From positions 2,046,001 to 2,110,000 of the forward strand of contig NC_134468.1 in NCBI RefSeq assembly GCF_964194025.1: a stretch of DNA of 64,000 nucleotides, read 5' to 3'. Position numbers and translations under genes: made by a program. The stretch's first letter is position 1. Every line of letters starts with the position of its first letter. The notes beneath the pieces were generated by a model. The model saw only the letters and a program-made list of their open reading frames with translations. It did no database searches and was not told where the DNA came from. This DNA is from Convolutriloba macropyga. Its lineage: Eukaryota. Shown piece by piece: positions 6,804 to 32,500 of the stretch.

Positions 6804-7867
6804 CCCGGGCCGTTGTGTCAACTCTAAAAACGCAAAATTATGTATGATTGGCGTTGAAAGCGTTTAATTTATGTAAGAGCAACGCTTGACCGTCGACCCT
6901 ACATAAATTCAACCCATTCAACGCCAATCTTAGATGTTTTGTGTTGAATTTAGCGTAGAGCCTTCAAAATTTTCGTTGAATTTAGCGTAGAACTTATATA
7001 ATTTGCATTGAATTTAGCGTAGATCTTTCATGAACTCAATGCACCCAACGCCCATCTTACATAATTTGCTTTGAATTTAGCGTAGATTTGGGGGGTGGGG
7101 GTACGTGTGGGGGTGGGGGGTGGGCGAGAGGGGTGGTGTTGGGGGGAGTGTACGTGGCGAGGGGTTTGTGCAATGGTGGGGTATAGGGGGTGCGTGGGGG
7201 GGAGTTACGTGTGGTGAGGGAGAGGGTGTAGGTGGGGGATTTGCGTTAGGTGGGGTACATGGGGGTACTGTGTGTTAGGGGGAAGGGGTGTGGGGTTCGT
7301 GGGAGGGGCAGTTTTTGCGAGTTGAAACGACAGAAATGGAGAGTCAAAATTGAAAAAAAAATCGATTAAGATTTAAATTGAATTCAACGCAAAATTACGA
7401 AAAGTCAACGCTAAATTCAACGCAACGTTTTGTAAGATCTACGCTTAGAAACGCAAAAACTGTGTGAATCCTAATGTTACACTTCGATTTGTAAAGAGTG
7501 CGGTTCCTAGGAAAATTAAGGTTCTGTGGCACAGTGGTAGAAGATGCGACAAGTAAGCACGAGGTCAGTGGGTTTAGTCCCATACCCAGATTTCTGAGCT
7601 TTGTTTTTTTTGTAAAATCAACGCTAAATTCAACGCAAAATATGTAAGATCTACGCTAAATTCAACGCAAAATATGTAAGATCTACCTTAAATTCAACGC
7701 AAAATAAGTAAGCTCTACGCTAAACTCAACGCAAAATATGTAACATGTACGTTAAAGTCAACGCAATCAACGCAAGATTATTTAAGAAAATTGCAGAGAA
7801 TTTTCCGACTTGTCAACGCTAGTTGCCGCTGATGTTACATAATTTTGGCCAAAATCCTCGACCAGGG
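6804..7867. mobile_element. Non-autonomous TIR element, CCC...GGG termini, 2-bp TSD (CG); CACTA/EnSpm-like; ~33-bp minisatellite interior
   Basis: Left end cg|cccgggccg, right end cctcgaccaggg|cg; interior of aaattcaacgcaaaatatgtaagatctacgct repeats in both orientations, plus a G-rich tract and a tRNA-like segment; inverted relative at 28648-30178. Confidence 0.75.
7520..7590 (+). pseudogene. tRNA-derived segment (weakly Thr-AGT-like) inside the TIR element
   Basis: A box TGGCACAGTGG, anticodon-like arm TGC-GACAAGTAA-GCA, variable region CGAGGTC, T arm GTGGG-TTTAGT-CCCAT with degenerate B box; acceptor stem poor, so not a functional tRNA. Confidence 0.55.
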
Positions 7868-8869
7868 CGATTTTTTACAAGTTGCAATGCTATAACAGGA
7901 AAAAACTGCGAAAAGAAAAAGTCAATTAGAATCAGTTCTGCTGATCGAAATGCTGGTGATAATTATTTCATTTGGTTTTCAGTTAGTTATAGCTTCCATA
8001 AATACTGAAATAACTTTTGCAGAACTTGCAAGATTCTGGCAAGAGTTTGAAAACGGGCCAAAAAATTTTTTATTGATTTTGGTTTTGTAACTTGTTTAAT
8101 AAAAAATAATTTGCTTCAAAGATGTTTTCTAAAATATTTGTAACCTGATTTATTTTTTGCCTTTATTGATATCTTGCAAGATTCTTGCAAGAATCTTGCA
8201 AGATCTGAGTCATCTTGTAAGATTCATGCAAGATTTCAAACCGCTCATCGCCAGGGATCAGATGTAACATTATTCAGGCTTGGATTTTTTCAAGAGTAAC
8301 AGTTGTCAATTGGTCCGCTATCTGCAAACAGCGCTTCAATTTTTTTTTCAGTTTCTATTACCTAAATGCAAGGTTTTGGAAGTCGTTATTTGTTCATATT
8401 TGTGCCTGGGAAATATAGTTTGGTTATGACAATTGACACGTCATTCGGTTTCAGCTGAAATATCAAAGAGAGCGCAAATTCAAACATTCTCTGAAATCTA
8501 TTTCATTCGCTGACATGCGTCAATGAAACGAAAAATCTATTTTTTTAATTCCTTTTTAAAGCGAAACTAAACAGAAATGTGTCAAAATGAACAAGTTGCA
8601 AAGCTGCATTGAAAGCATAGAAACATTTGTGTGAAGTTTTAAACTTCTTTTCAGACTTCATTGCTGAAAAAAACGATAGAAAATGGAGTGTGCTTAGCCG
8701 AATGAGCGGTTAGCCGAACAAGAAAGAAATTAAATTTATATAGAAAAGTTGTCGTTACCACATTTCAACCAAAATTTTGCTAAAAAGTGATGAAAATTTG
8801 CGTTTTATGCATTGGGTATCAAATTTGTGGCACTGGATGTTTTTTATGACCTATTTTAGTGTGATCTTA

Positions 8870-9145
8870 AAATTGCGATCTGTCCGCACTTAAATAATTT
8901 ACGGGTGAAATAGGGGTGAAATAGGGGTGGAATTGCGGTGAAATAAAGGTGGACTTAGAGGGAAATTCCGATCTGTCCACTTTAAGAATTTACGGGTGGA
9001 ATAGGGGTGGAATTGTGTGGAATAAAGATGGACTAAGAAGGAAATTCATATTTATCCACTTTCCACCCTTACCCCTGATTTTCAACGGTGGAAAACTTTT
9101 TACACTCCTATCACCGATATTTAGCTGTTCATGCCTCGACCCGGG
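8870..9145. mobile_element. Partial TIR element ending in cctcgacccggg, with ggggtg(a/g)aata repeats
   Basis: Right terminus identical to that of the 30933-31363 element; internal direct repeat gatctgtcc...aatttacgggtg at ~8877 and ~8971. Confidence 0.6.
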
Positions 9146-9490
9146 AACTGACCATAACGCGAGAGGGGGGGGGGACTAATCAGCTTTATTTGCCATTTTT
9201 TCTCATTCTGCTAGATGCCCATTCGGCTAGATGGGCGTCCTCACTCACGGAGACAACTTTGGTAAAATATTTATACAACTTTGAACAATTTTTTCCTTCT
9301 CAAGTTTACAATAAGGAATAATAAACAAAACTCGGCGTGTTGCAAAAAGTTAATATACTTTATTTTAGTGGCATCAGTTTGGGAGAGTTTTGTTATCTAT
9401 GCGACGCGCATATTGTAGACAAAAGTTGAATCTAAAGCAACAAAAGCTGCGCTTCATTTTTCCACTGTTTCATTATTCGCTCAGCTTCCA

Positions 9491-9498
9491 TTTCAGTT
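9491..9498 (+). promoter_or_regulatory. TTTCAGTT ~45 nt upstream of the EF-hand gene ATG: Inr-like TCAGTT or a 5'UTR splice/trans-splice acceptor
   Basis: Matches both TCAGTT initiator and a pyrimidine-preceded TTTCAG acceptor; cannot be distinguished from sequence. Confidence 0.3.
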
Positions 9499-9540
9499 GA
9501 TACCATTTGGTGAATAACTAACTAATTTAATTTAACTCAA

Positions 9541-9543
9541 ATG
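9541..9543 (+). CDS. EF-hand gene coding exon 1 (ATG only)
   Basis: tcaaATG|gtaagt consensus donor; phase 0 fits exon 2, which lacks its own start. Confidence 0.75.
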
Positions 9544-12500
9544 GTAAGTCACTTCTAAAATTTAGCCTCAAATTCAATATGGATGGTTTAAGTTTAAATT
9601 GCGGCAACTTCTGCGCCGCGTGTACTTCAAAATTGTTCTAAAAATTGGCATTAATTGCATCGACGGCAAAACAAAAAAACAACTTAGCTTTTGCTGAGAT
9701 AATTGTTCTAGAATCTTGCAAGTTTTAAATAATCTTCCATGAATCTTGCAAGTTTTGAATCATCTCGCAAGAATTTTGCAAGTTTTGAAACATGTTTCAA
9801 GATTTATGCAAGTTTTGAGTCATCTTGCAAGTTTTGAACAATGAATCTTGTAAGTTTTGAATCATCTTGCAAGAATCGATCTCGTAAGTTTTGAATCATG
9901 CAAGAATCATGCAAATTTCGAATAATCTTGCAAGAATCTTGTATTTTAAGATCATCTTGCATGAATCTTGCAAGTTTTGAAGCATCTTGCAAGTCTTAAA
10001 TCATCTTGCAAGAATCTTGTAAGATTTGAATCCACTGATCATTAGGGTTTCTATCTTCTATACTCCAAAAGTGTTTTCAGTAAATCAGGTTTTGGGTGGT
10101 GACTACAAAATGCGAAAAAGATTTATTAAACTGATTTCACTTACGGATTCGAGTACTGAAGAGAGATCGTCTCCAGTTCTGAATTGGTATTTAAAAGAAG
10201 CAAGTATGATATACTTACTTCTTTTAAATTCAGAACTGAAGACGATCTCTCTCAATAGATGTTTTGAAACAAATTGATTTTAGAGGTTTTAATTGTGGAA
10301 TGTTTTATATCGCAGAGTGGAGAGAAAGAGAAGGAGGCTATCAAGTCTCTCTTAGACAACGAGGATGCTATCAAGTGCATTGTGGCCAACATCATGCAGG
10401 AATTCGATAAGGTATCCTTAAAGTTAAAGATTGTCTTTGAGATTTTAGTTATTTTTTTTATAAAATTGCTTCCCGAGTCGAGGATTTTCCCCAAACTTAA
10501 CAGGGAAAATAACAGAGTTGAAAAAGTGAAAACACAGAATATTTCACCGTTAGTTATCTCCTTACTAAGGTTGGAGAAAGTGTAATTTAAAATTAAAGAT
10601 TATAATTACTGCAAAGATCGTGGTCTGGGTCTCGTGACGTGTCTTGATGACGTATCTCAATTCTGACGCAGTCAATTTATTTGCCATTTGCAAGTCTCAT
10701 CAACCATTTTATGTCAAATATCGATCTGAGCTGATTTAACTAATTTATTAGAGCGAATTTGTCGAATGCACTAACGGCATCTTGGATAATTTCAATGATT
10801 CTTCAATGATTTCAGAAAACACACCAATTTGTGTCTATGAGCGCAAATTTTTAAATTCAGGAGAGTTTATTTTCGCTTTAGGACAAAAACGGGTCATTAG
10901 ACAAAGACGAGACGAAGCAGTTGATTAAACATTTCCTCTCACAAAGCGAACTAGTAAGTAAACAATCGCTTCCCATAAAAAAATTGCTATCCATAAGAGA
11001 GACCCTTCATTTCCGTGGAACTGCTGTACTGGATGCATTTGTTTGAATTTTGCCTACAGGATTTCAAAATCTTTCTTCGATTGGAAGTTTGGGTGCTTTT
11101 TCGTACTTAATTTTTGCTTGCGTTTATTTTGCCACGCTTGTTTTTGCCGTTGTTTTCAGAAATGTTTCAGATAGATTATTATAATTAAATTTTTCCATCA
11201 CATTGTTTTACTAGAAAACATTTGTTTAAAACTACTGAAATAATCATTTGAGAGGTTAATCGCTCGTAAGGTAGAATATTGAATTTTATTGAAAGTTTGG
11301 GCTCTCTCTAAATTTTGATGATGCATGAATCAAATATTTTTTCACACTTTATTTCCAACACATTCGATTTTTTTCCAAATTTTCAACAGTTTCATTTGCC
11401 GTGGGAGGGTCAAGTATATACTTTTTAACTCTCCCAGCCCAATTTCTCCAATTTTTGCTGAGAATTATTGCTTTTAAACTACTGGGTATAAAATTAACCG
11501 ATCAGTGCTGAAGAGAACATTCAACTTAGATTCCCATTACCAGCACGCTGTAGTCCCCCAAACTATTTTAAAAGCTCTCAAAAAGAATTGAAAAAAAAGG
11601 AAAGTTCAAACGGAATGCCTAAAATCTATTGGTGGGCATCTTAAGCTGGATTGAGTTCCAAGCACGACGCAAACAACCCTGAAATGGTCGATGAAATAAC
11701 GGCGTCAATAGAAGTATGCAGCACTACCATTGTCATGCAGTCGTGTTGTGCACGCGAGGTTTATAACTTTCTACCAGTTCAATTGGGCTTTAAATAAGAA
11801 ATTTTTTACAGATAGTGACTACAATCAGAGCCTCATTTACAACAAATTGTTGCCAATCTGTTTTCTTTTGGTTTGAAATGATCTTCTTATGCTTAACAAA
11901 GTTTACAACTGTGATACTGCCCTTAAGTTTGATGATTATTGGAAAGTTTTCAAGGGACCACGCAGTAACCGTTCTGCAGCAAAACAATTTTTGAGAACAC
12001 ATTTTAATTAGACGAAAGCAGTCAAATTGGAAGAGTATATTGTCCTGAGAGTTGTGAAATATGCAAATGTTCTCACCCAGTGAAATGACATCTCAACTTT
12101 TGACTGGACATGTCCAACGGTGTTATTTCGGAACAGCTGAACTCTCTGTTGAACTTAAAGGCTGTGAACTTTAAATACTATCAGTATCCTGTTAATTGGT
12201 CCTGTTTTTGTAATTCATTAACAAAGTGATTCCCGCATCGCGGNNNNNNNNNNNNNNNNNNNNNNNNNNNNNNNNNNNNNNNNNNNNNNNNNNNNNNNNN
12301 NNNNNNNNNNNNNNNNNNNNNNNNNNNNNNNNNNNNNNNNNNNNNNNNNNNNNNNNNNNNNNNNNNNNNNNNAAAATCGGCTTTCAGTTTTGCATTCAAA
12401 CTGCCCAATTAGAGTTCTAGAGCTATCTTAACCAGTTTGCATTGTTTTACTTAGGGTTAATCATTTAATAGGCACAACGTCAATATGCCAGCTCAATTGA

Positions 12501-15500
12501 GATTCTGAGAAAGAACTACTCTTAATAGTTATTGTGATGAAAATTGTGAATTCAACACTATCAAAATAGATTTGAGTGGTAATTGTACTTGTAGGGGTGA
12601 AAAAATGTCAAATTGTTTAGTTGACTATGGGGTTCCAGTTTTGAATCGATGACAATTTCTAATTATCTGCTCGTTGAGCGCCCGTTGAAGAAAATTTTGA
12701 GCTTTATTGGGAATTTTTATTCTATTGAATCACTTCAGTTAAAAAGTCTCTTTTTTTATATGCTTCCTAAGCTTATTGTTCAAATTGTTCACGAAGTTCT
12801 CATATTTAGGGGGAAAAATTTGTCCTTTTCATTTCTTCGAGGTAAATTATTCAGAATTGTCTTAAAAAGTGCTTTTAAACTATAAGGCATGAAAATAGCT
12901 TAACAGTGCTGAACCCAAAAGAAGAAAGAAAAAATGCGTTGAAACCGGAACCCAATATCTGTGGGTTGTCATGTATAGCTCGTTAGAATTCCAAGCACAA
13001 AAACACGCCAAACAACCAATGAACTGACCAGTAAAAAAAACGAGATCAAAGATCAATAGTTTGTCCTCGCACTACAATTGGCGTGCATTCAAGTTGTGCA
13101 AGTAGCCTTTATCTTTACAAGTTATTCGGAATTTGATTTTAAAATGTTTTTTTTTTTAATTTTGCCTTTAAATCGGTAAACCAGAATTCAAGAGTTATTT
13201 TTATTTATTTCCAGTTTCTTAGGGTTAAATTGGTTTCGCAATTCCGAAAAATTTTTCAGATCAATTACACAGATCAATTATAGCATAGTCGTTCTAATTT
13301 AAGATTTATTACAGAGTGCCTGGATTGGTCTTAAAAATCTTGAGTTTTGACAAATAATTTTTGCTGTTCAAGACAAACATGTGACAATTATTTTTATCTC
13401 AGTTCTAAGGATTACTGCATATTGTCAAAAATTCATGGCATATATTGCACTTAATAGAATATGCCTCTCCTCACATACCGTCCTCCCATCACTATCGCCA
13501 ATTCAAATCTTGATCTCACCCCGTAGCCTCATTCCAGCCGTAGCACTTCTCGCTCGTAGCAACCAAAGCTCGCCTTCCACCCTCTCATGTTCACTCCAAC
13601 CCTTCTCAGACCACCATGTTCACCATTCTCCCTCAGTTGAACTAAAGTTAGTATCCCCATGCCTCAGCCAGCTACTGATGAAGCCAATCACTTGTTGTTT
13701 GAGAGCAATTAGCCTCGGTGTCGTTTTTTAAAACGCGGCTTTAAATGTTTTGTAAAGATTGCCGAAATTTATCGTTGACTTTTTTAGTAGAGAAAATTGG
13801 CCAATTCGCTACGAAATCATTGCCAGGTTTCATAGTCGTTGTTGAGAAAACTAACTGACAAAAGGCAACAAATAAAAGTCCTCCTAGTTTTTGCTGACAG
13901 TTGATATTTTACAATAGAAAGAGCAGTTTTCATAGGTTGAAACAATTTTTAGACAAAGTTCGTGCTTTTTATTTTGACCTAATGTCTTCGTTGAGAGAAA
14001 TATACTCAACATAAAAAAAATTATTTTGTGGTTAAAAGTCTCAACGGATTACATCTCTGTTGCAGTCACTATTTCTTAAAAACAGTCCTTATTTTTTCAA
14101 AACCTATGTTCAAAACCAAAACACAATAAGTTACTGCATAAAAGTTTTCATGCTCATAGATTTTTTTCATTATAATGGCACCATAAAAATCAATTTTGTT
14201 TGACATAAGAAGCAATAAGAAAACAATTTTTATCTGTTTACTTCAGAAGCAAAGAGAATTTTCGATTTTGAATTTACAAAACGGTGTTATTATGTGCTTG
14301 GTATCATATTCCAATGCATCTGATCTCAAATGCATATATTTTGAGATTTTTTTATAACTTATACTCAAAAAAGGCATATCAATGTTGAACCCATTCTTTC
14401 GTTTCTTCATTTTGTTTGTTGGAGCATTTTCTGTGTTTCTCCATCTTAATCTTTTTTTAAAAATATGGGACTATAAAAATGTGCCGATTTCAGCTTTATT
14501 GCATTCTGGTGTTTTCCCAAACATTAATTATTAACTGTTTTTCATTCCATTTGCTCATATCCAAAATTTTGCACTTCTGTGGAGAATTTCCTTTTTAAAG
14601 GAGCTTAGATGTTTGAACATTTACTCGTCTGGAAGCTCTAAATTAGTTGTAATTCATTTGTGGAATGCGTTGTTTTGTAATATACATACGACGCTCTGGA
14701 AGTTCAAAACTGAATTTTAACTGATGTACTAGCTCTTTCCTTAAAATATTTTTTTGTTATGTACCAAATTTAGGTCAGTTCACACTACTAAAGTCTGAGT
14801 AACAAAGGCGATTAAAATTGATAAAAGTCGGGCAGACTGAATTAAATCACTCTTCAACAATTTGTCAGAAATAATGTTAACACGTAGCAATTGATAGAAG
14901 TAACAATTTTGTCAATCTTTTTAAATTTTTGACTTCAACAGTTTTCTATTGTGACAAACACACAAGCTGCATTAGAGGAAATAAGCAAATTAGCTTTTAA
15001 CATTTAAGTAGCCAATTGATATCTTGTGGGATTTTTTTCCGTTTTTTTGGTGTGATTAATAATTGATGAGATTTAAAACTGAGGTTGACTAAATTTTGCT
15101 TTAAGAAGATCGTATTGCTGTCTGATATTGTCAATTGATCTTCCAGCTACCTCTTGATTGCACGTTCATTAGATGCACCGCTTTTTTGTATAAGTTACTC
15201 GAAAAGCCTTGTTTCTTGTCCTGTTTGAATTATTTTCCGTTATCAAATTCATGGAAACCTTTTAAAAGACAAGTTCATGGTGTGAAGGGCGCATCTTTGA
15301 TTCGCTCGCCCCCCCCCCGTTCGCTCGCCCCCCACCGGCGCTCACAACCAAACCTACTCCCCATGCTTACCCCTTCAATTCTGAGGTTAGTTTTTGCGAA
15401 ATTTGTAATTGACTTTAAAAAACGATCTTTCGCAATCAATCATTGCTAAGTTTTTCATGGTAATTTGTAAATTATCTATGTTTAGAAGAGCATACAATTT

Positions 15501-15818
15501 TTTTCTAGCTTAATATATTTTAGTGGATCCAATCATATAAAAAAGCGAAATATTAGAGCGGCTTACTTGCAGGCGCCCTTACAGAACACATGTCTAAGCT
15601 TTTGCTCGGGCTTTTGTTTTTTTTTCCTGTATCAATGTTTCATTGTTTTCTTTTGTTTTAAGTGCGACGAGGCAGATTTGCAAATTCCAGACGAGCTCTA
15701 CAACAACATTTTCCAAGCATACGATGCTGACGGTTCCGGATCAATCGACCAAGATGAGTTAGGAGGATTTATCAAACAACTACTAGGAGAGCTGCTTCGA
15801 GATCCTGAGGATGCCTGA
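9541..15818 (+). CDS. Small two-EF-hand calcium-binding protein, 108 aa; join(9541..9543,10316..10411,10882..10953,15663..15818)
   Basis: All introns GT-AG, phase 0. Spliced product MSGEKEKEAIKSLLDNEDAIKCIVANIMQEFDKDKNGSLDKDETKQLIKHFLSQSELCDEADLQIPDELYNNIFQAYDADGSGSIDQDELGGFIKQLLGELLRDPEDA; canonical 12-residue loops DKDKNGSLDKDE (split across intron 2) and DADGSGSIDQDE. Confidence 0.9.
9710..10056. repeat. Minisatellite of atcttgcaag/gttttgaatc motifs in intron 1, ending ...atcattaggg
   Basis: About ten ~30-bp degenerate units containing palindrome cttgcaag; same motif family at ~6213-6275 and ~8171-8257, each also ending in GGG. Confidence 0.8.
10154..10257. repeat. Near-perfect ~104-nt hairpin in intron 1
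   Basis: gagagatcgtctccagttctgaatt...ttaaaagaagcaagtat-gat-atacttacttcttttaa-attcagaactgaagacgatctctc; ~45-bp stem, 3-nt loop, one ~4-nt bulge. Confidence 0.9.
10316..10411 (+). CDS. EF-hand gene exon 2 (SGEKEK...MQEFDK)
   Basis: ttttatatcgcag acceptor, gtatcc donor, 96 nt, ends at entry of EF loop 1. Confidence 0.9.
10882..10953 (+). CDS. EF-hand gene exon 3 (DKNGSLDKDETKQLIKHFLSQSEL)
   Basis: ttttcgctttag acceptor, gtaagt donor, 72 nt; completes EF loop 1; not in the ORF track. Confidence 0.92.
12244..12372. other. Assembly gap (129 N) in intron 3 of EF-hand gene
   Basis: Run of N. Confidence 1.
13460..13745 (+). mobile_element. C-rich dispersed repeat, related to 60338-60632
   Basis: Shared tail cagc(c/t)(a/g)gctactg...aagccaa...gtttgagagcaatt(a/c)gcc followed by TTAA in both copies. 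Confidence 0.5.
15663..15818 (+). CDS. EF-hand gene exon 4 (CDEADL...DADGSGSIDQDEL...PEDA*)
   Basis: Long pyrimidine tract plus ttttaag acceptor; canonical EF loop; TGA stop. Confidence 0.93.
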   Translation, partial: CDEADLQIPDELYNNIFQAYDADGSGSIDQDELGGFIKQLLGELLRDPEDA

Positions 15819-16245
15819 ATTTAAAACTAATAATATAATATTGATGTCTAGTTATAACAACTGTTTTACAAACACCGCACTCGCTTCTTTCTGACCAGGG
15901 CCAAGGGTCAATTTGAAACGTATTATCAAAAATTAATAATTTTGCGTCACCAAAATACAAAAGCAGACATTATCCCATTTTCCATTCAAATATTCCCTTC
16001 TGTTCTTAATTTTGTTGAAATTGCCATCTTTATTTATGAAAGTGACCTCTTGACCCCGGTAAGATGGAAGCTTCACGTATAAGAGTTTAATACTTCAGAG
16101 AAGGTTTGGATTGTTGTTCTTTGCAATATTATTATCCTACACGGTTTTCGTATATCAATCTTTTTCATGACCGTGACAATGAGATTATGATTAAAAGTTA
16201 GCCGGTAAGATTAGATGATCAATTGCTTTTGATTTCAACGCGTGA

Positions 16246-16267
16246 AATAAAACCTGTTGTGAATAAA
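16246..16267 (+). terminator. Tandem AATAAA polyadenylation signals of the EF-hand gene
   Basis: aataaaacctg repeated at 16246 and 16262, ~430 nt after stop; third AATAAA at ~16290. Confidence 0.55.
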
Positions 16268-17541
16268 ACCTGAAAACATAAGTAGTCTAAATAAACTGTT
16301 TTTGATCGAGATGACGTTGTTTCATTTTTAAGTGCGTCCAATAATTGAGCTTTTTTTCATATCAACAAAAACTTCATACTTCTTACATCAATTCGCAAAA
16401 AAAAACATTAACTTTGCACGTCCGAACTGCAATGATGGACGATATTGAACAGCACTCAAAAACTGCACCAATATGCTCTGTTAAAATATGTTCTTGTGAA
16501 CAAAAACATGAAACTTTTGTTGTGTTTTGCTATTGTTCAAATGAGAATCAAAGCAGACATGCATTGTTGAATTCAAGAAAGAGTATACGTCGCTTATACA
16601 GTCTTAGGAAATAGATAGTCTAGGTAACAGAGACCCTTATTGTTTCGGATCATGTATTGTGGTAGAAAAAAAGTTACATACGTCTGATTTTTTTTTATTA
16701 ATCATGTCGGCGCTAAGGAGCGAAAAAATCTTGAAATTTCAGACTTAATATTTAAGAGATTACTTTAAAGCTTTCTCAACTCAAACAGAAAAGATGGTCA
16801 ATTCCATCTGATCTTTTACCGCTTGCTAATTTTTTTTTGCTAGAAAATGTCTTTTTTATGTACAAAAATACACAATCAACTCGACTTAAAATCAAGGTCG
16901 TGCGCTGTGCATTCAGAAAAATTTTCCTCGAAAAATGTGCTTGCAGGCAAAATATGGAGTCGAAGTACCCACAAATTGTCAAAAGATCTGCAATGCGTTT
17001 ACAGCTTTTTTGGAAGACAAATTTTAGAAAATATTTTGCTGCTTTTCTAGAAAAAAAATCTTTCAAACTCTATAAAAATAACAAGGAGTAAGAGAAATTT
17101 TTTAAATCTTGTTTTTCGATCAATTGAGACTCAATGTGGAATATAACAGAGAGTGGAGTTTCATATTAAGTGCTTTCACATATTACAATTTAGCTGTTCA
17201 AATAAAGTTTGGGCATGATGAATGTTCGTATTGCCAAGTCCGACTAATTATAAAAAAAGACAAGATATTCAATTCCAAACTGAAAGTATATAGTGAAAGC
17301 GAACTCAAACGAAATGTAAAACAAATAATCCTAATTCAAAGTAGCGGTTTTAATCAGAAAACTAATTTTGACAAGTGTAGTTGGGTAAATAGTAAAAAAA
17401 GGATTAAATCAAAAAATTTTAAAAGTTTTCCACTTTATGTTAGTACGCTCCAATAAAAGAGTAATAATATATGCACTGAATGCTTAAATTCACTAGCTTT
17501 CCTTATAAATTTCAGATAAGCAGTGTTTATTTGTTTCATTG

Positions 17542-19420: not shown

Positions 19421-19716
19421 ACACATTTTAGATAGAGCCTTGCAAAATTTCACAAAATAATTATTTCGGCGTTTAATTTGGTTATGGTTATTGAGCATGG
19501 ATCTCACTAGTTCTCCAGAGGACAATGTTTAAGAACAATTTGGCTACACATATTCAAAAAATTCGTCTGAATTTTTTTTAAAAGTTTTGTTTTATTTTCT
19601 TTTTATTGTGTTCGAATCTTTTTCTCCGCAAATTCTTTTTATTAAAAAAAACAAGAAAATGGAGTAATTTTTTGAAAGATTTCATTTTAGCGATGCATTG
19701 ATTCGTTAGATCTTTG

Positions 19717-19879
19717 GGATCTATTCTGTTTTGCCCCCCCCCCCAGTGTTTTTACGCCCCCTATACAAATTATATGTTGTTATATAGCACGTTACTATGT
19801 AAGAAAATAGCACGTGCTCCTGGGGGCGTGAAAAATATAAGCTCATTAAGGTGGGGTGGGGGGCAAACAGAATAGATCC
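19717..19879. mobile_element. 163-bp MITE, GG...CC termini, 8-bp TSD (Merlin-like)
   Basis: TIR ggatctattctgtttt-gcccccc / ggggggcaaacagaatagatcc; inner IR tttttacgcccc/ggggcgtgaaaaa; flanks gatctttg / gaactttg (7/8). Confidence 0.8.
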
Positions 19880-20190
19880 GAACTTTGTCATAAATCGTTA
19901 TGACTTCCTACCATTCATCTTTAACTGTCTCATCTCTCTCACCATTTTTAAGGATTCATTTTTTGTCAACAAATATTTTTCGAGCTGCTCGGACATGTAG
20001 AATAATTAAAATTTTTTCCAGAGGTCAACCAGTAAAAGTTGAGCTTTGCCGTGTTGTTTTTAGTTACAATGGTTGCAAACTAAAACATTATCACAATTAC
20101 AGCTTATATGTTCAAATTGTTTCACAGATAGTCAAGCGTTGTTTCAAACTCTCGCTTACGACAAACCAACAAATTTGGAAAGTTAAAATT

Positions 20191-20509
20191 TCATCTATTA
20201 TATCTGAACAAATAAAACAATCTCCCTTTGTCGTCAAAGTTCATATCCAGCCAAATTTCAGACTTCAAATTAGCCAATTCTGGTCGAATTAGTCTCAATT
20301 TGTCCAGATTCTCTTTGAACACGTAGTACAATTTCAAGATCAGCTCGTTAGTCTGTTCCTTTCCGTGAAATACTAAAGTTTTCATCTTGTCATCAGTGAC
20401 CTCGAATGTCATGCTGAGGGTTTTGGCAATTAGATGTTCATTTTCCTTCTTCAGAACTGCGATTTCTTGGGTCAGCGCTCGATTTTCCTCTTTTTCTTGG
20501 GAATACAGC
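20191..20509 (-). CDS. Coiled-coil gene exon 9 (last; LYSQEKEENR...FRYNR*)
   Basis: tatttcag acceptor, phase 2 completes AA|G Lys codon; TGA stop. Confidence 0.88.
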
Positions 20510-23500
20510 CTGAAATAATAAAAAAGAAGATTTAATCCGCTCATAACTTAAAACAGAGTGCTTATTTCTTATACAGGAGAATTTCAGAATAAAAAAACTG
20601 AAAAACATAATTTCAGGGTTTGGTGATGAATTTGGTGTTTTGAATCTTTACTTTTATTATAAACAGGAGAGCCGCTGATTAAACACTGTATGTTGATTTA
20701 TGTTGACAACATTTCTCACTTTTTGAGCTACAAGCATCGCTTGTGATGAAACGCTTGCCATTTCGAACGTCTAGCCGCCTTGCAAAATAACAATTTCGTG
20801 CAAAAGTCTTGGAAGATTTTGGCTCTCTTGGATCTCGATCTTAATGTAAGGATCCTGTTCTTTTGTTCTGGTAAACTGAAATTCAATTCGAGATAATTTG
20901 AGGCAAGAGATAATGGCAAATAGGTCTAAATTGTAAGGTAAAAAAATCTGTTAATATAAAATTGTTTGTTTTTCATATTACTATGATCTGGGTCTAGGAA
21001 ATAAACCCCCACGGATAAAAAAAACCCACTTAACTTTAGATAGAAAATAAACCTCCACGGAAATAAACCCTCATTTTAAAATTGAATTTCGGTCGTGATC
21101 ATTTGCTCGGTTGTGATAGTTTCATATCAAGTCCCACGGGCCGCTGAGGCATGGCCAAACGCACTAAATGCGCAGATCTTTAAGAATAAAGTGGGGGTTT
21201 ATTTCCGTGGGGGTTTATTTCCTATCTAAAATGAAGTGGGTTTTTTCCGTGGGTTTTTTTTTCGCAACCGCTAGGATCCGGGTTGTTAATTGAACTTCTT
21301 TTAACACATGTAACAGCTGGATAAAAATTGATTACTAACTTCAATTTGCGCTCCAACTCTTCAATTGCCTTCCGTTTTTCTGCAATTTCATTTGCATCTG
21401 CTCTGTTCGACTTGACCTCTTTTTCCAAAATATCCACTCTCTCCATCAAATGCTCATTTTCAGCCTTCGTTTTGGAAAACACGACCAATTTTTGTTGAAG
21501 AGATTTTTCATTGTCATCCGACTGTTTAAGTCGTGCTTTGAGCCGTTCAATCTCGGCTAGGGCTTCGTCTAACTCGGCTTTGAGTTTGGTCGATTCGGTT
21601 TTGAGCCGATCTCTCTCGTCTTTGAGTTTGTTTTTGTCTGTGTTGATTTTGAAGATATCATCTTGTAGAGTGTTAAAGTCTGTTTGTAATTGCACTTTTT
21701 GCTCCTCTAGTTTTGATATTTGACTCTAAAAATAGATTTAATTTAAAAAATAATGCACAAAAAATTGTTTTTACGTGGGCCCTATGCAGGTTTTGGGGCT
21801 TTAAGCACCAAAATTTTCACAAAATAACATTAGAACGCATTGTTTTTGACATTTTTTCAGTACTTATCAACAACCAAAGCTAAAGAGAGTGGGCTAAAAA
21901 ACATATTTGGTCCCATTTTTGACAAAGAGAGTCTGAATTTTGAGTAATATAGTATAAATTCTAGAACAAAAACTCGGATCGAACAATTCAGCAACCCTCT
22001 TCTATCTTTAAAGACAAAATCAATCTCATTATCAATAAAAATTTTAACATATTTTATGCAAAATTGACGACAATTTTTTCAAAAACACGGAAAATGTGAA
22101 ATGAAAACAATGGAATACCGTCTCCTATTCGCAAAACTATAAACCTCGATGACTCCGTGTAAAATACGAAAATTATCGAAATCTTTTTAATTGCAAATTC
22201 TACACTGCACGGGCTTTCTAATGATACCACTCACAACTCTCTAAGATGATTATATCGATCGGCGAAAATTGACTGAACTAAAAAACCCATTTGGGTATAT
22301 AGTTCTGAAGTGAACTGAAACCATCTAAACTTTTCAGTGTAAATTTTAGAAAAGTCACTTACCCCGTCGAAAAAAAAGTTGGCGTAACTATTCGATGGAA
22401 AGTTTAAACTTGATGAAGTAATGAGAGATTTCGCGTAAACTGGAAGATTCCCATCACTTGCCGACATAATCTACAAATAATCAATAATTTATTTAACAAA
22501 CAAACTCTGATAATATAATAATCAATTCTATGAATTGTTTCTGTAAAAACAACAAAGAAGGTTAAGCTGTCAAATAAAACAAATAAACGGAACCACTAAA
22601 AATGTAAACACCCTCGCAACGTATAAGTAAAGTGACAATGACGTAACATTTTTAACCCTTTAATTGGTAAGCTAAATTTGGTCCGAAGGTCCCCGAAATT
22701 CGCTATAAGCGAAATCCTCGACTACCGAACTTGAATTACTTGAACTTTAAAATTAGAAATTTCCAACTTGTACAGTAATTTAATCACCTTTTCATCGCTA
22801 TTTTTGGCACTTTTCAACTTCTTTATCTCATCTTCGAGGTCATCGATGTCTTTATCTGCTTCTGTCAGCTCTTTTTCCAGACTCAAATTCTGTTTTTTCA
22901 CTTCTTTCAATTCCCTGTCTTTTGCCTCCCAGTCGGACTTCAGCTTCGCTATTTCTTTCAAAAAATTGGCCTCTGATTGGTCAAACTCCGCATCCGCCTC
23001 CTCCAACGAATGCTTCAGATCGCTGATCTAATCGACCAATCAGCGTTTAGATTTCAAAAAGCATGTTTTACAAAAGTATGAAAATCAAAAACAAAACCTC
23101 TTTTTCCTGTAACTTTTTTTCCTTCTCCGCCTTTTCCAATTCGTTGCTGAGGGTTTCAATTTTCTCTTCCAGCTGCTGCATTTCAAGGGTTTGTTGTCTT
23201 TTAACTCCAGCTGTTATTTGCTCATCCTTTAAAAATTAACCATTTAAAATCTTAAAACTTAAATGGTTCAAATTTTTCCAACAACCAAAAATTGATTAAC
23301 TTTTTCTAACAGTTGTTGAGTAAGCTCATCATTTTTAAGACTGATGGCACCAATTTCGTCCTCTAGCTGTTTGACCTCTGTTGATTTATCAGCCGCAGTT
23401 TTGAGTGCACTGTTTTGATCTCTGAGGTCTTCATTGTCTTCTTCCAGACTGTTCACTTCTTCTTCTAAGTGTTTGATTTTGTACTCTAGTGACTTCTTCA

Positions 23501-26500
23501 AAGTTTCTTCGTTCTTTTCATAAGATTCCTGTGCAAATTGAACCGCAACTTACTTTTATTATATAATATATCATTAAACATTTTCCCAGTATTTTGCTGT
23601 TAGCTTTAAACTAAACTAGTGTTTGCATCCAGAAAAATTCAACCATTGACTGCCTGTTGAAATTTGTTTTAATCCTTTTCGGTACAAAATATGACAAATT
23701 TTAATTTTCAGAAAAAGAACGAGGTTTGGAAAAAAACGATTTCTTTTAAAAACGACAAAAATTTTAAAGGAACTTCTGATTTTATTCAATGCTACCAGTA
23801 ATTCTGCTGCATACAAAGTGCAACTAGTAGAAAAAAGGAATCACATTTGGAAAAAAAAATAAAAACAAGATATTCTGCGAGTTTTTGCTAAGATATATTT
23901 TATTTTCAATTACGGGTTGAACTATACAATTACAAATTCAAAATTTGGTTATATTTTTGACATTATCTTGAACAGTTTTAATTTACTATTTCTGATACAA
24001 CTTTTAAAGATTTTTTTAGATTTAGCCAAAATAAAACAAGGAGTATTTTTGAAAATTTTTGTAAGCCTTGCCTTCTTCGATCTGAAACTTCCTGAGCCAA
24101 TTTCGTAGGTTGCGTATCAAAAAAAAAAAAGCAAAATCCTTTTGACAAATCATTCCTTTTCCTATTTAAAAAAAACTTTTAGGACTTCAGAGACAAAAAA
24201 ATTAATTCAAAGACTTCTCCTTCGAGTGGAAGGAAAATTTCCCTTTCACTCTAATTTTTTTATAATAATCATAAAGAACCAGTACAGATTTCAGAAAATA
24301 GAAAAAATGTCAGATATGCACTCAAAATGAGCAAAATTTTAAATGAGTTAAAACTTTTTCTGTTTCGTTCAACTATATTGAATGGACTTTTTGTTACATC
24401 AATAGCCGTTTCTTCTTTAAAATTTATGAATAAAATTCGAAAAGTTAACATAATTTTGAAAATTTGATTGTTTTCAAATACGATAAATGCTTTACCTTTC
24501 CTTGAATCCTTCTACTGAAATTTTTCCTCCATGAATATTATTTAGTTTCTATAAGGTGTTGTCTGAGATATTGAGAACACAGTGATCTTCAAGTAGAAAA
24601 GTTAGATTTGTTTCCTTCAAAATTTTTAGAAGTCCATGCCCTCGCTGTTCATGTTGTCTAACAAATCATTGTGTGATATCTTTCAATACAGCATATTTTC
24701 GTGCATTGAGTCATGCATTGATCAAATTTTAAAAGTGTTAAAATATTTTTGATTAAAAAAAACAGATCGAAGGTCTATGACTGATTTCAACCAGTTGTCA
24801 ATACACAGTTGAGGTAGATTTGTGAAAAAATAGATGAACATAAATCCTGAGTGACAGATTTTCTAAAATTCGAAGCCTTTATTTTGGTTGCAAAGAGTAG
24901 AACAACTCCCTTCTTTGACTGCTAAGCTGGAATCCTTCACATAAACTACAGTAGGAACTTTATTGGCAATCGAAAACTATGTTGGAGACTTGACGATTTT
25001 TTGTATTTAAATTTTTAAATCTCTTTCCTCTAAAAATTGTGTTGAATAAAGCCTATTTGTCTTAAAACAATTGTGGAAAAAATGCCCATTGAAACGATAA
25101 ATGATTTCTTTTTTATGATACCTGGAGACAATTATTTGGAGTTCAATTCATAAAATAATTGATGAGAAACAATTACAACTCGTAAAAGTCTCTTAATTTT
25201 ACAAGAAAAGATTAATCGCAATAGCAGAGAAAATTTGAGTCAAGTGGTGTTTTAAAAATTGTGATGATGTTCAACTCCAAAAAATTATTTTATAGCCATG
25301 TCTGTTTTTTCCGATCGAAGCATGACTTAATTAAACAGTCCAAAGGGTTTCAGTAAAATTGAGGCTCTTGATCCGGAATTTTGCAATTCCCTGCCAATTT
25401 TTTAACCATAGAATATTCTTTAAAAATCTCAAATCGGAATTGCTCCAAATTGCTCCCATACATACTCAATACAAAAAGATTATATCTGTTCTCCCTTGTT
25501 TTACAAAAACTTGTAATTTATTGATTTGCAACTCATTCCTTAATTATGAATAATCAATTAATCAGGGCTTTTTTTTGCACTATTTTGTTACCTTATGTCA
25601 AATTCAATAACATTTTTTAAAGATTTGGAAAACTAATTGTGAAACCTTTTCTTCATATCCATGGAAGTTAGGTGCACACTGCTAGAAATTTGGTGATCAG
25701 CCTTTACTTGCAAAATTGTTTTGTTATGAACATTGCAAAATTTCTGAATATTTTCATTATTTTCTCTTTCGAGAAGAAAAACCATTCTGAGTGAGTATCA
25801 GAGTTGCCGATATCTTGGGACTATAATAAAAAATATTTCAGTTTTTTCATTAATCTTGAAGCGTCTAGTTTTTAAAATATCATGCAATTTACTACGAAAT
25901 AATTTCTGGATTTATCGAGTAATGTTTTATGGATCGTCTCTTATTAGAATAACATGAGATCATTCTTCAAAGGGAAGGAAACTAGTTCCAGTTATTAAAG
26001 TTACTTACGATATTTTGCGGCTCAAATGGTTCTGTATTAAAGATACTTTTTTAGCATACGCATTGCTGACGTTAAGAAAATGAAATATTTTCGTGCGCTA
26101 ATATCCGTAGCACTTTTTCAGTTTAGTATTATTTGAACTGTCTTGCATTGAACAGTAATATCAATTGATCAGTTTTTTCTTCAATTTTATCTCAAAATCT
26201 AATTAATTTTCAATTTTGATCGAAAAAGTATTTAGCTCCGTTCTTTTTTTGGAGCTGTAATATATAGTTAAATTTAGCTCAAAATACGTAATTTTTTACT
26301 TAATGCTTTTGTGCTGTACTGCGCAATTCAGCATGTGAAGCTTACAGTAAAACCGCGTTTAGTGAGGTTCAATCTGTTTATTTGGATATTGAATAGCAAA
26401 ACCTGAATTTCGTTCAGGTGCGCTTTCAGGTTCTCAATTTCCCTGTCCTTGAGAACTATCGCCTCGTGCAGCTCCATCTTTTCCTCGTAAAGCTCATTGA

Positions 26501-29500
26501 TCAGAACCCATAGCTAAAATATAAACAAGAAGTTGGAAAAAAAAAGAAAATAATCACCACATATAAACAAAAAATCCACAAATAATAACAAAATTGAATG
26601 ACAAGAATGAATAACTAAAACGTAAGGCTACGGTTTTGTAGAGGTTTACAACAAACTATATATTTTTAATAAGCAAAAGTCCACCAGAAAGTGAAACTTT
26701 TACAACGCACAATTAACTTAGCGTGAGTCATGGTTTTCGTTGTTGCTAATAAAGAGCTGTTTCAAAAGCACAAAGAAATGATCAAAAGTAAAAAGTGAAG
26801 AGTTGACCATGTATAATACTGATTGATTGTTGAGAATTTTCTTGATGTTTTTGAGGTGCTTCTCTGATCAATTGTTTGAACTCTATAGTCTCTTATGTGC
26901 CATGAAATTTGAAACGCCGACAAACACAATGGGTGAATAATAATCAGAAAAATCAAAGAGCTCCCGGGCCAGTGTTTTCCGAAAATTATTTGAGATAAAC
27001 AGTAAACAGTTTAAGCTCATTTAAAAATTTTTTTCTAGACATTCAGCTTCTTTCGTACACATTTTGTACACGCATGTTGAGGCGCCTTCCGTAACTGACC
27101 TATGTGCCAGACTGTGCCAGACAAAAGTAACCTCTGATCAGACTATCCCAGACCAAAGTGTCCACTGATCAGACTGAAGTTCGCTCGAAACACAGTGCGC
27201 GCTCGGAGTGAGCTCAAGGTTGTATCTGATCAGACCTTTCCAGACGGAAATGACCTCTGATCAGAACCAAATCAGACCATTGTCCAGACGATTTTTCGAC
27301 CATGTCCCAGACCAAACCCAGACCATTGTCCAGACGATTGTGTGCTCAAAATTAATTCTGAACAGACTACTGTGCGCTCGAAAGTCACTCCTGATCAGAT
27401 TATTGTGCTCTTAAAATCGCCTCTGATCAGACTAAATAATGCTTGAAATAGTCTGATCATTGAACGGTTTTCATTATGAACGAATCTCTTTAATTATGCA
27501 ATAATACTTTCATCTCATAAATTGATCTTTGCAGTATTCAATTCATCTAAAGAAAAACAAATCTAAAAGTACTGCTAATGAAAAGAAAACCCAACTGCTG
27601 AGAAAAAAATTTACTTTACCATTAGTTCATATTTCTGACCTAATGGATGAATTTAGACAGCTTTCCATAAGAAACACCGTGGTCTACAGTTAATCAAAAT
27701 TTCCTCTCAAGGGAACCCCCATATGCTATCAGCTCGAGATTTGTCCTTAATCAAAATATTGCTTTTTTGCCTCTTGGCAGAGCCAATATCTCTCAGTAAA
27801 AAAATGCACAAAAAAACGAAAGAAGAATAAGCGCTAGAGATGGTCTCTGAGATCAAACCCAATTGCGCTCGAAACTCCCTAATCAGACTAATGTCCTCCT
27901 GGGTACACCTCTGGTTAGACGAACCCAGACAGCCGTTACCATCCGCCAGTGACACCTGATCAGACCATCCCCAGACCGAAGTGACCTCTAGTCATAATAT
28001 TGTGCGTTGGAACCAAATCTCAGAACCTGTAACCCTATTGTCTTGAAACAAACCATGTGAGTTGAACTTGGGCCTGATCAGTGGTCACTTCCGTCTGGCA
28101 CCTCAACCTGGGGCACTTTTCTAACATCTCATCCAAAATTTCCCTTTTTTCCAAAACTTAATAGCTTGTCTAACAATTTTTCCGCATATTCAGCGCCTTT
28201 CTTTTGAATTTTCAAAGCTTGTGTAATCCTCAGCTGGTAGTATATCACGCTAAACAGACGCTACTTCAGCAGATCAAGGTTGTCTCTGGTACCATTGCCT
28301 TCCCGGTTTCGGAGATAGTAGGTTTGCGTCCTCTTAGCAGCAAATTGTGAGCAGTAAATTCTTAGCAGTAACTTCCTAGCAGTAAAGGGAGTTAGCTAAT
28401 ACCACACTTGACTTGTTACATTTGCCTTGTTTAACCTATGTACTTTCTTGATATTTTGTCCTTATTTTCCAGTCTTTCCTTGGATATTTTTCACACTCGT
28501 AACATTTCTCATCACAATTTTCTACATTCTCAACACGTATCCTAAAAAATTTCAAAACGTTCCCTGCATGTTATTCACAACTTTCTGACATATTGTCAAC
28601 GCTTAACACTCTTTCTGTGCAGGTCTTCTAAACTTTCAGTAGTTTTTCCCAGGCCAAGGAACTTTTTAAAATTATATATGACAAGCGGAAACGAGCAATG
28701 ACAAGTCGCAAAATTCAACGCAAATTGCTTACATAAATTTGGGTTGAATGAGTTGAAATTAGAGACATAAATTCAAAGCAATCAACGCAAAATTAAGTAG
28801 AAAAATTTCAAGGGTTTTTCCGACGTGTGAACGCTAGCTACCACCTACTTTACATAATTTTGCATTTCTAATAGCCGATCTTACATAATTTTACGTTGAA
28901 ATATAGTAGATCTTAGATAAATCAACGCGTAGAACTCTGCGTATGAGACTCGAACGACTCACCACCAATGTGCCACAAAACCTTAGCTTTCCTAAAAATC
29001 GCCTGTTTATAAATCGGACTGGAACATCACGTTGCACATAATATTGGTGTTTCTAAGCGTAGATCGTACATAATTTTGCCTTTTCTAAGCTTATACTTTG
29101 ATTAATTTTGCATTTCTAAGCGCAAATATTCAGTACTTGTTAGTTGCATATAGCAAAGCGTTGGGGTTCCGCAGACAATTATTGAATTTCTTTAAAATAA
29201 ATTTTGACTTGAAAACGGGTTTTCGGTGACTTTAAAACGGACTTTAAAACGGGACTTAAAAACTTTAAAACAAATAACATGAACTTGACACAAAAATCAC
29301 TTTTGGGATTCCAAAATTTGTAACCTAACCATAACCCCCACGCACAACCTCTGCCCTACTTTTCGCCAAACTCCTCAACCCTCACACACACAAACACAAG
29401 GCCATACCTAGTTCCCCCAAATCCAACGCAAAATTTTGTATGATCTACGCTTAAAAATTATGTAAGGATTGCGGTGAATGCATTGAATTCATGTAAGATC

Positions 29501-32500
29501 TGCCCAAACTACGTTCGACGCAAAATTATGTAAGATCTAAGCTAATTGTAACCCAAAATTATGTACAATTCTTGCTAAATTCAGCGCAAAATTTTGTAAG
29601 GTCAAAGGAAAATCCGACGCAAAATTTGTAACAACTAAGCTCGAAAACCCAAATTCATGTAAGATTAGTGGTGAATGCATTGAAGTCATGTAAGATCTAC
29701 GCTATATTAGACGCAAAGTTTTGTAAGATCTACGCCAATTACAACGAAAAATTACATAAAATCCACGCTATATTCAGCGCAAAAATTTGTAAGATCAAGG
29801 TAAAATCCAACGCAAAATTTTGTATGATCTACGCTTAAAAACGCAATTTTATGTAAGATTAGCAAAATGCGTTGAATTTGTGTTAGATCTACGCTACTTT
29901 CAACTCAAATTTAGGTAAGATCTACGCTAAGTGCAACATAAAATTATGTAAGGTCTATGCTAAATTCAATGCAAAATTATGTAAGATCAAAGCTAATTCC
30001 AATGCAACACTACGCAAGATCTACGCTTAAGAACGCAAAATTATTTATGATTAGCGATGAATGTGTTGAATTTATATAAAATCTACGCTTGAGTGTAGAT
30101 CATACATAAATTGAACGCATTCACCGCCAATCGTACATATTTTTTCGTTTTTTTTTAGCGTTAACACCTCGGCCCGGATCTTAAAGCCTTTTAGTCTTGA
30201 TGCGCTTTCAAATTATTTTGTTCCACTTTTTCAGCAAATTTCTGACACAATATCTAGTCTTTCTGAACAACTTTTCTACGCTTTTCTGACAACCTGTTTC
30301 CCACTTCTAAAACGTACAAGTACTGCAACAACAATTATTGGAATTCCTATATTAAACTGTGGTTAAGAAGCTGAAATTGGACAGTTTATTAAATTGCTAA
30401 ATTTATATATAAAATAGGCAGAAATCGCTGGTTTATGACGTTTTTAAGTTAGCGTATAATGTGTAGGAAAAAAATGATTTTTAAATAAGTTTCAATAATC
30501 GTCCAATTCAGTAAAGGTCCAATTATACAGAAATTTGACAAGAAAAGGAGATATGATAGAAAAGCATAAAAGCACGCTAGCATATTAAGAAAAATACGCT
30601 ATCCCGTTCCAAAAAAAATCACTGACAGTTTCTGCAATCAAGCAAAATTGATTAATTTGTTGTCAATTTCAAAACCATTAGTTGTTATTCGTTTCTATTA
30701 ATTCGATTTGAAATATAAAAGAAGCGATTTGAAGATGGCCTGACCTGTACAACAATATACAAATGTCAGCATATTGACAACAAGCAGAACCCATTAATTA
30801 AAGCTTTTAATTTGTTTGGCTCTGAATGCAAAAACCTCGGTACGTCATTTTTATGTAAAAATTTGGCACGTGTGTCCGGGGTGGAAACAAAATGCACCCA
30901 CTAAGCTGGGGGTACACACGGAGAAAATACCACCCGAGTCGAGGTTTGGTGGTGAATTTTGGTAAGAAATGCGGTGAAATGAAAAAAATTTCACCGCTTA
31001 TTTCTTACATCTTTTTGCGGTGAATGCGGTGAATCGCGGTGGATTATTTATTTTTACCGCGTTCTCAGTACTCTTACATACAATAGTCGTCCCTACCCGG
31101 GTTCGCACCTGTGAACTCCTGCATGCCTTCATCTGCTTATTCCACTGCTATTTAAAGAAGATTGAGTAAACGTTGGAAAGCGAATGCGGCGAATTCTTGT
31201 AAGAAATGCGGTTAACTTCCCGGTGAATTTTTGTAAGAAATGCGGTGAAATGCGGTGAAATATTTATTTTCAACGCATTCACCGCAATCAGCACTTTTCT
31301 TACAAAAATTCATCGCATTCACCGCATTTCTTACAAAAATTTACCAAAAAACCTCGACCCGGGCATTGTCGAAAGAGGATGAAAAACTATGTTGACCTCT
31401 AATCAGTATCTAATGGGTTGTTCTTCAAGGGTTATAAAGAAAATCTCGAAAAAACCATAAACTAATAATTTAAAGTACAACATTTGCGGATGTAAACAAT
31501 ATCATTGACAATGACAGAAATCTGCACGCCGATTCAGCAATACTGGCACAATCGAATTGCAATTTCAAGGCAAGAAGAAATTTTGTGCTATAGTTTCAAA
31601 AAATTCTGTAAGCACTTTTTTGGTTTCTGTTTAATCGATCAAACGATCTCTCAACTAGAAATGGTCTTTTTTCAAATGTGAAGGAGTCACGGAGTCAACA
31701 TATGATCCATTATTTGTTAAACTTTCCTGGGGTAACTTTTAATTCTAAAAACTCCTTATTTTTTTCCCGAGTTTAAACAAACTTTGAAAGATAAGTCATT
31801 AACTCAATTAAAATTGCCTGTTTTATATAAGTCTTTTTCAGTTTTATATATTTGTTCAAAACTTTTTGTTTTCATTTTTCCGATAAACGAATAAAATATA
31901 ATATGCATGAAAACAACATTTTAGTTGCACTAGTATTTTGGTTTAATTTCTCTTGATTTGAATAGGTAGCCAGTTCCGATGGCTTGCTGGCGCAGAAATA
32001 TAGGCAGCTTGTGCACTCAACCAAACACGGTCCATTAGGAGATTCAGTTTTCGACGTTCAAAAACTTTTGTTGATAAATGTCGGAATGTTTATTTGACAC
32101 AGAAACATTTCAATCTACGCTTAATTTCATGAACCATGCTTCTTACTACATTTTTGTTTAACTGTGGTGATAAACAAACTAAAGAGTGAAATCGTTCGCT
32201 GTATGATAGTAGGTCGCTGTATTTTTCAGTTACCGAACTGAGCGACAAACCAGACAAAAGCTAGCACTCACAAGGTAACCTATTCACCAATAATTGATCG
32301 AGAGCAAATCTTCAACCTAGATCCAAACCAGATAGCAGAAAAACTGATCAACTGTCCGGTGTGCCATTGAACATCCTTTAATTTCCTTTAATAATCACCG
32401 ATTGCACCATTGCATTGATTCTTTTGTTTTTGTTTTTTTCTAAGTTTCTGATTACAGTGACAGTCAGCTGAGTTGTGATTTGTTAAAATTCCTTAAATTT

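Follow-up and report, generated by a model that had tools for sequence, protein, structure and literature searches.

A stretch of 64,000 nucleotides from the genome of Convolutriloba macropyga (RefSeq assembly GCF_964194025.1, contig NC_134468.1, positions 2,046,001 to 2,110,000 of the forward strand), termed here the window and the source of all coordinates given without a contig, contains three transposon-like elements, each with CCCGGG-type inverted termini and, in its interior, a tRNA-like unit bordered by ~32-bp repeats arrayed in opposite orientation on its two sides. A sequence-only reading of this DNA had noticed the three segments, described them as tRNA-shaped RNA polymerase III (Pol III) cores between inverted minisatellite arms, and proposed that two different families of DNA transposon with terminal inverted repeats (TIRs) had each captured a tRNA or SINE (short interspersed nuclear element) head. 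The segments are found at 7520-7600 (+), 28917-28990 (-) and 31073-31148 (-), the ~32-bp arrays flank all three of them, and each lies, as had been said, inside a TIR element and lacks a SINE-like tail; the elements are flanked by 2-bp target site duplications (TSDs). Their supposed tRNA shape and twofold capture fared differently, and it is the origin, the history and the possible use of this tRNA-derived cassette that are considered here.

The first element is a copy of a family termed F1. It extends from 6804 to 7867 on the + strand (1064 bp), is 88-90% identical to parts of the F1 consensus, and has decayed termini, CCCGGGCCGTTG...CCTCGACCAGGG, flanked by the TSD CG at 6802-6803 and 7868-7869. 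Its left arm is a 32-bp repeat array (6917-7089) that is inverted with respect to the right arm (inverted repeats I1-I9, 75-94% complementary), and this is followed by a variable G-rich segment of the GGGGT type (GGGGT/GGGGGTG; 7090-7330, +), which is found in ~6 of 29 F1 copies, coverage falling to 5-7 of 29; this block could form G-quadruplexes. The tRNA-Thr-derived unit occupies 7520-7611 (+; E = 1.6e-22 with the family profile hidden Markov model, HMM) and closes with a T8 run at 7604-7611, and the right-arm 32-bp minisatellite, of 4.9 units, extends from 7611 to 7766 (+). The A box of this copy, TGGCACAGTGG, is intact, while its B box is damaged, reading GGTTTAGTCC in place of the consensus GGTTCGAGTCC.

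The second element, termed F1b, is an older F1 copy of 1530 bp (28648-30177, -) that is 80-83% identical to parts of the F1 consensus and has an imperfect TSD (GA/AA in sense orientation). Its core (28917-28990, -; family HMM E = 3e-6) has suffered a 24-nt internal deletion that removed the 3′ side of the D-arm and the anticodon arm. The loss of the anticodon arm had been recognized before, together with the claim that both boxes were kept; in fact both are mutated, and the T-run is gone. The third element belongs to a family termed F2 and is, exactly as reported earlier, a MITE (miniature inverted-repeat transposable element) of 431 bp (30933-31363, -). It derives by deletion from the ~648-bp F2 family and has a CA/CA TSD on the + strand (30931-30932 and 31364-31365). 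Its core (31073-31148, -; family HMM E = 8e-12) has lost 35 nt through a deletion that took away the leader on the 5′ side together with the 5′ half of the A box; the T-run is destroyed, and the B box, GGTGCGAACCC, carries a T>G change. Hence none of the three window copies combines an A box, a B box and a T4 run that are all intact.

The nature of the carriers is clear from their other copies. Family boundaries were set by BLAST of the surroundings of the window elements against 58 other genomic copies, and they are sharp. A third family, F3 (L009, L054 and L092), turned up by chance in the flanks of the loci studied, and F1, F2 and F3 share termini of the form CCCGGGYCGAGG...CCTCGRCCCGGG, inverted at the two ends and 12-13 bp long in F1 and F2, CCCGGGYCGAGG(T). 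Inside the termini lie the subterminal arrays of ~32-bp repeats, which are built on a GCG(G/T)TGAA motif and have opposite orientation on the two sides. A matching 2-bp duplication is present at both ends of 26 of 28 F2 copies (TA in 13) and of nine of 11 full-length F1 copies. The terminus 13-mer has 6256 matches in the genome and its reversed control one, and there are at least 569 F1 candidates. Correctly oriented, the F2 copies have a single layout of core and arms; the full-length F2 consensus is 648 bp, and 15 copies are 98.5% identical to one another. In contigs of four public runs, all from one study, the contigs break exactly at the ends of a young copy and lead into many different flanks, and among these contigs none was seen that spans an empty site for the young copy L038. 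The elements measure 0.43-1.7 kb, have interiors made of repeats and lack coding capacity. With their TIRs, fixed-length TSDs, short length and large number of copies, F1, F2 and F3 are non-autonomous cut-and-paste DNA transposons, that is MITEs, present in hundreds to more than 1000 copies, and the earlier description of the tRNA-like segments as DNA-transposon passengers is borne out.

In the published literature, the animal TRC group of CACTA/EnSpm transposons is recognized by termini that begin with CCC and a TSD of 2 bp (DeMarco et al., 2006, PMC1636069; Spongebob, PMC4298943). The F1/F2/F3 lineage has both a TIR starting with CCC and a 2-bp TSD, and because of these it fits the TRC group of the CACTA/EnSpm (CMC) superfamily, a placement judged by termini and TSD. 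The ISL2EU/PHIS elements were also considered on account of their 2-bp TSD and were ruled out, as their TSD is AT within the target AATT and their TIRs begin with GG (PMC4482050). Genes for Transposase_21 proteins, with open frames of ~1000 amino acids, are abundant in the genome and are candidate transposases of the right superfamily. Between 9100 and 28700 of the window no open reading frame of 160 or more amino acids was found, and so no autonomous element lies beside the window MITEs. On contig C1, pairs of + and - matches of the terminus 13-mer are spaced 21-27 kb apart at 4813093-4840590, 5262223-5288655, 8653219-8678998 and 10250410-10271902, where chance would give ~0.8 such pairs among the first 100 matches of the 13-mer; these four pairs may be a lead to autonomous relatives. 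At two places F1 cores stand in tandem (L016-L018, C9:47.650-47.653 Mb, spacing 646/1163 bp; L019-L021, C12:54.801-54.803 Mb, spacing ~870 bp), which suggests that local amplification has turned F1 elements into short satellite-like arrays.

Damaged as it is in the window, the cassette is complete in the family consensuses. A Pol III type-2 layout was scored as an A box TRGCNNAGTGG, a B box GGTTCRANNCC 30-60 nt downstream, and a terminator of T4 or longer. The F1 consensus has the A box TGGCACAGTGG, the B box GGTTCGAGTCC and a T8 run, and the F2 consensus has TGGCGCAGTGG, then GGTTCGAACCC at tRNA-like spacing and a T6 run fifteen nt further on. In both, the A box and the B box are canonical and spaced as in a tRNA gene, with an oligo-T run 15-25 nt beyond the B box, and the same layout is found in 16 of 30 F2 copies. 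To this extent the description of the segments as tRNA-derived Pol III cores stands.

Comparison of the F1 and F2 consensuses, with z-scores taken against alignments of shuffled sequences, showed them to be homologous at the left end (z = 11.6), in the core from A box to B box (40 of 51 positions, z = 10.6) and in the last 110 bp of the right end (z = 20.7). The homology also takes in the unit's 5′ flank (AAGTAAG) and the T-run with the GTAA that follows it, and in both families the cassette points the same way and is placed alike towards the right end, the tRNA-Thr pseudogene lying ~120-330 bp from one element end. F3 has intermediate termini and arms and holds the same cassette, and so bridges the other two. 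Since the three families are homologous in termini, subterminal regions, 5′ flank, core and terminator, their common ancestor can with high confidence be taken to have already held the cassette of A box, B box and T-run; the shared termini, TSDs, subterminal repeats and core, together with the fit to TRC elements, argue for one MITE lineage and one inherited cassette. That two unrelated MITE families each captured a different tRNA or SINE head, as the sequence-only reading had it, is extremely unlikely in the face of a homology that runs from the unit's 5′ flank through the boxes and the T-run to the termini. In its favor, the arms of F1 and F2 appear different by eye; the window cores, called unrelated in sequence at the time, have little in common beyond the box motifs, but only because each of these cores is mutated or partly deleted.

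The core is likewise an integral part of the element and not a free SINE. In whole-genome pattern matching, a 25-mer of the F2 core had 1078 matches and a 25-mer of the F2 left end 1267 (up to two mismatches allowed in both), so that cores amount to ~85% of left ends, and a 20-mer of the shared core had 295 matches where its control had none. An exact core 21-mer occurs 210 times, and an exact 17-mer contained in it occurs 168 times with an exact right terminus 150-175 bp away; at least ~75-80% of exact F2 cores are therefore accompanied, at the distance expected, by an exact right TIR. This genome-wide pairing of core and right TIR gives no sign of free SINE copies of the core. Had SINEs inserted independently and come to lie within MITE copies by chance, the cassette would be found at various positions, but it is at the identical position in every copy examined; in these copies no separate TSD surrounds the core, an A-rich or LINE-like tail is absent (LINE, long interspersed nuclear element), and core counts follow those of the TIRs. 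Such an origin has nothing in its favor beyond the presence of A and B boxes, and it is hardly credible.

The probable parent of the cassette is a tRNA-Thr gene. A profile HMM of the F1 and F2 cores was searched against sampled genomic loci that included tRNA genes of seven isotypes (Thr, Ala, Cys, Lys, Arg, Pro and Gln), and among these tRNA-Thr was the only true tRNA matched, with E values down to 2e-6; there was no match to the sampled Ala, Cys, Lys, Arg, Pro or Gln genes. The F1 consensus is ~80% identical to tRNA-Thr (AGU-type) over the first 60 nt and has an alignment score of 32 with it, versus 20 or less with the other true isotypes sampled. Within this sample of seven isotypes, the alignments identify the tRNA-Thr of this genome as the source from which the cassette appears to be derived. 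The tRNA-Thr genes matched by the HMM form a large cluster on contig C13, which is the likely parent of the MITE cassette. This tandem cluster (L061, L063-L066, L069, L070 and L083; C13:31.10-31.23 Mb) is very large, with a spacing of ~273 bp and AGT, TGT and CGT anticodons, and a few members with a Thr body are assigned to Ser(AGA) or Arg(TCT) by ARAGORN.

Two further tRNA clusters also contain variant anticodons. A tRNA-Lys(TTT) cluster (L077-L081, C7:44.05-44.06 Mb) contains several TTA copies, which ARAGORN labels tRNA-Stop, and one TTG copy; these variants could be ochre-suppressor-like or pseudogenes. In a tRNA-Cys(GCA) cluster (L067, L068 and L082, C15:4.79-4.83 Mb) many members with a Cys body have the anticodon GGA (Ser) and are anticodon-shifted copies in tandem.

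What the cassette has kept of tRNA-Thr is the promoter layout and not the RNA shape. The Rfam tRNA model RF00005 matched nothing in the window, whether the gathering threshold or a limit of E ≤ 10 was applied, and nothing at E ≤ 10 in 20 genomic copies that included young ones with perfect boxes. With ARAGORN, too, the window yielded no tRNA, and neither did the two consensus units, for which the threshold was also relaxed; the two units fold no better than shuffled sequences (z = +2.3 and 0.0). Where tRNA-Thr has all 21 of its 21 cloverleaf pairs, the F1 consensus retains seven, the F2 consensus nine and F3 copies five to eight. The segments can therefore not be called tRNA-shaped. Separately, the arms gave microRNA-like Rfam matches with E values as low as 1.7e-6; none reached the gathering score, and they were dismissed as palindrome artefacts of the inverted repeats.

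If only the promoter layout has survived, it must be asked whether it was preserved or simply happened to remain. The latter would hold if a tRNA-Thr pseudogene had been picked up once by an ancestral MITE and carried along ever since without a role, a passive passage that is quite possible, though it falls somewhat short of an even chance. Against it stands the distribution of changes between tRNA-Thr, the F1 consensus and the F2 consensus, which were compared pairwise by position class (one-sided Fisher tests). Among the 17 specified positions of the two boxes none differs, while three to four of the five degenerate (N/R) box positions do, as do 10-17 of the 33 positions between the boxes (30-52%), with p values of 0.0013, 0.0022 and below 0.0001 in the three comparisons. 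All three families, F1, F2 and F3, also retain the T-run, even though the spacer that precedes it varies in length and sequence, and the youngest burst, the 15 F2 copies that are 98.5% identical, has a perfect A box, B box and T6 run. An F2 copy that lost its B box and terminator through an internal deletion (L050:169-659, C8:38.434 Mb; TSD TG/TG) is the single B-box deletion derivative that was examined, and its junction occurs once in the genome. Because no specified position has changed against 30-52% of those between the boxes, these comparisons suggest that master copies, those that go on to found bursts, are under selection for the promoter.

Several results weigh against such selection and in favor of a passive passenger. 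Individual insertions decay neutrally: in 25 independent F1 copies the identity is 0.905 in the A box, 0.858 in the B box, 0.895 between the boxes and 0.83-0.91 in the flanks, so that the boxes show no excess conservation across copies. The A box, B box and T4 run are all kept in four of 26 F1 copies, beside the 16 of 30 F2 copies, and the cassette is damaged in each of the three window copies. A block outside the promoter, GCAGGAGGTCAG, is equally invariant between the families, and therefore conservation is not confined to the boxes. Elements with the same or similar CCCGGGTCGAG(G)-type termini, different interiors and no core detected by the family HMM also exist, and therefore the transposase does not need the cassette. 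Two of these are in the window, namely a fragment at 8880-9145 (+) with the same terminus, GCCTCGACCCGGG, and 79-bp repeats, and a lone left terminus, CCCGAGTCGAGG, at 10472-10500 (+) with no core match downstream of it; others begin at L034:2477 and L024:2015. The constraint test itself was post hoc and compares only two consensuses, of families that were noticed for having boxes. On the passenger view the conserved promoter letters would be due to chance, to families having been chosen for their boxes, or to the youth of the families.

Selection might also act on the host side, if the insertions had been domesticated as dispersed Pol III genes or as insulator sites for transcription factor IIIC (TFIIIC). 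The elements are present in thousands of copies, and TFIIIC can bind B boxes alone, as it does at extra-TFIIIC (ETC) sites and tRNA gene (tDNA) insulators. Against this, the boxes decay at the same rate as their flanks, and most old copies, all three in the window included, have lost a box or the terminator. Domestication is therefore very unlikely.

The best explanation of the whole is a single TRC/CACTA-type MITE lineage with an inherited tRNA-Thr cassette and a promoter that may have been selected in the master copies, an explanation for which a probability of about 0.7 is estimated. As for how the promoter might serve its carrier, the sequence-only reading had suggested the spread of Pol III promoters or TFIIIC-binding insulator sites, or short RNAs. 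By the most likely mechanism, the cassette would draw TFIIIC and Pol III to the element's center, and the outcome would be a tRNA-like RNA of ~80-95 nt, open and insulated chromatin at the element, or both. Excision by a TRC transposase, or escape from silencing, would be favored in turn, and the copies that found bursts would be under selection to keep the promoter letters. The chances that the cassette does recruit TFIIIC and Pol III, and thereby helps the element, are put at just under even. In its most complete form the proposal is that a CACTA/TRC-type lineage has used a tRNA-Thr-derived Pol III promoter in its own life cycle over at least three family radiations, that recruitment of TFIIIC and Pol III or a short tRNA-like RNA raises excision, re-insertion or escape from silencing, and that new bursts are founded only by masters whose A and B boxes and terminator are all intact; from the sequence comparisons this is a tentative proposal, which could well be correct but is rather less probable than its negation.

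Should it be correct, a selected internal Pol III promoter would tie a class II element to its host's transcription machinery in a new way, because DNA transposons move without an RNA copy, and thousands of potential TFIIIC sites would have been spread across the genome of an animal. The idea lends itself to direct testing, since the young F2 burst has a perfect cassette, the older copies with broken cassettes are internal controls, and candidate transposases of the right superfamily still have open frames.

Two further features lie in this part of the window. Arrays of a ~30-bp repeat on TCTTGCAAGA palindromes, partly inverted, are present at 8020-8235 and 9700-10030, and these may represent a different element of the foldback type without relation to F1 and F2. 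An assembly gap at 12244-12372 lies in unique-looking sequence, 4.4 kb from the F1 copy and 16 kb from F1b; it touches none of the features described and has no bearing on the cassette.

In full-text literature searches, no description was found of a TRC/CACTA element or MITE with a tRNA-like head or A and B boxes. The sequence-only reading had not recognized the architecture as a described one; this agrees with the searches as far as the Pol III payload goes, but the carrier belongs to a published group. The TRC elements SmTRC1 and Spongebob (EnSpm-4N1_HM) and their MITEs have, like F1 and F2, CCC termini, 2-bp TSDs, internal or subterminal repeat arrays and high-copy non-autonomous derivatives (PMC1636069, PMC4298943). 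None of the TRC/CACTA elements found described has a tRNA-derived cassette of A box, B box and terminator. A further parallel is MER6/MER6A, a Mariner-derived mammalian MITE that contains the V domain of a fish V-SINE and so is also a composite MITE in which SINE-type sequence is spread by cut-and-paste (PMC6887750). Unlike F1 and F2, it carries that central (V) domain and not a Pol III promoter head, it belongs to another superfamily (TA TSD), and conservation of a promoter is not claimed for it (PMC6887750).

The cassette by itself resembles a tRNA-derived SINE, in which a decayed tRNA head with a broken cloverleaf likewise keeps its A and B boxes, and in which the consensus is intact while single copies decay. 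Of the features of a SINE, however, only the tRNA-derived Pol III head is found. The terminator directly follows the head, with no LINE-derived, A-rich or simple-repeat tail, and the TSDs are not variable in length but a fixed 2 bp around TIRs, inside which the whole is moved by a process that needs no RNA copy. At tDNA and ETC insulator sites, a B box, alone or accompanied by an A box, is the landing site of TFIIIC and shapes chromatin. The cassette shares these motifs, but such sites are host loci at fixed positions, whereas here the motif, a candidate TFIIIC site, travels inside a transposon. The carrier is a known kind of element, and what is added to the systems described before is the single origin of F1, F2 and F3, their probable tRNA-Thr parent, the placement of the lineage in the TRC group, and a test of constraint by position class within the promoter.

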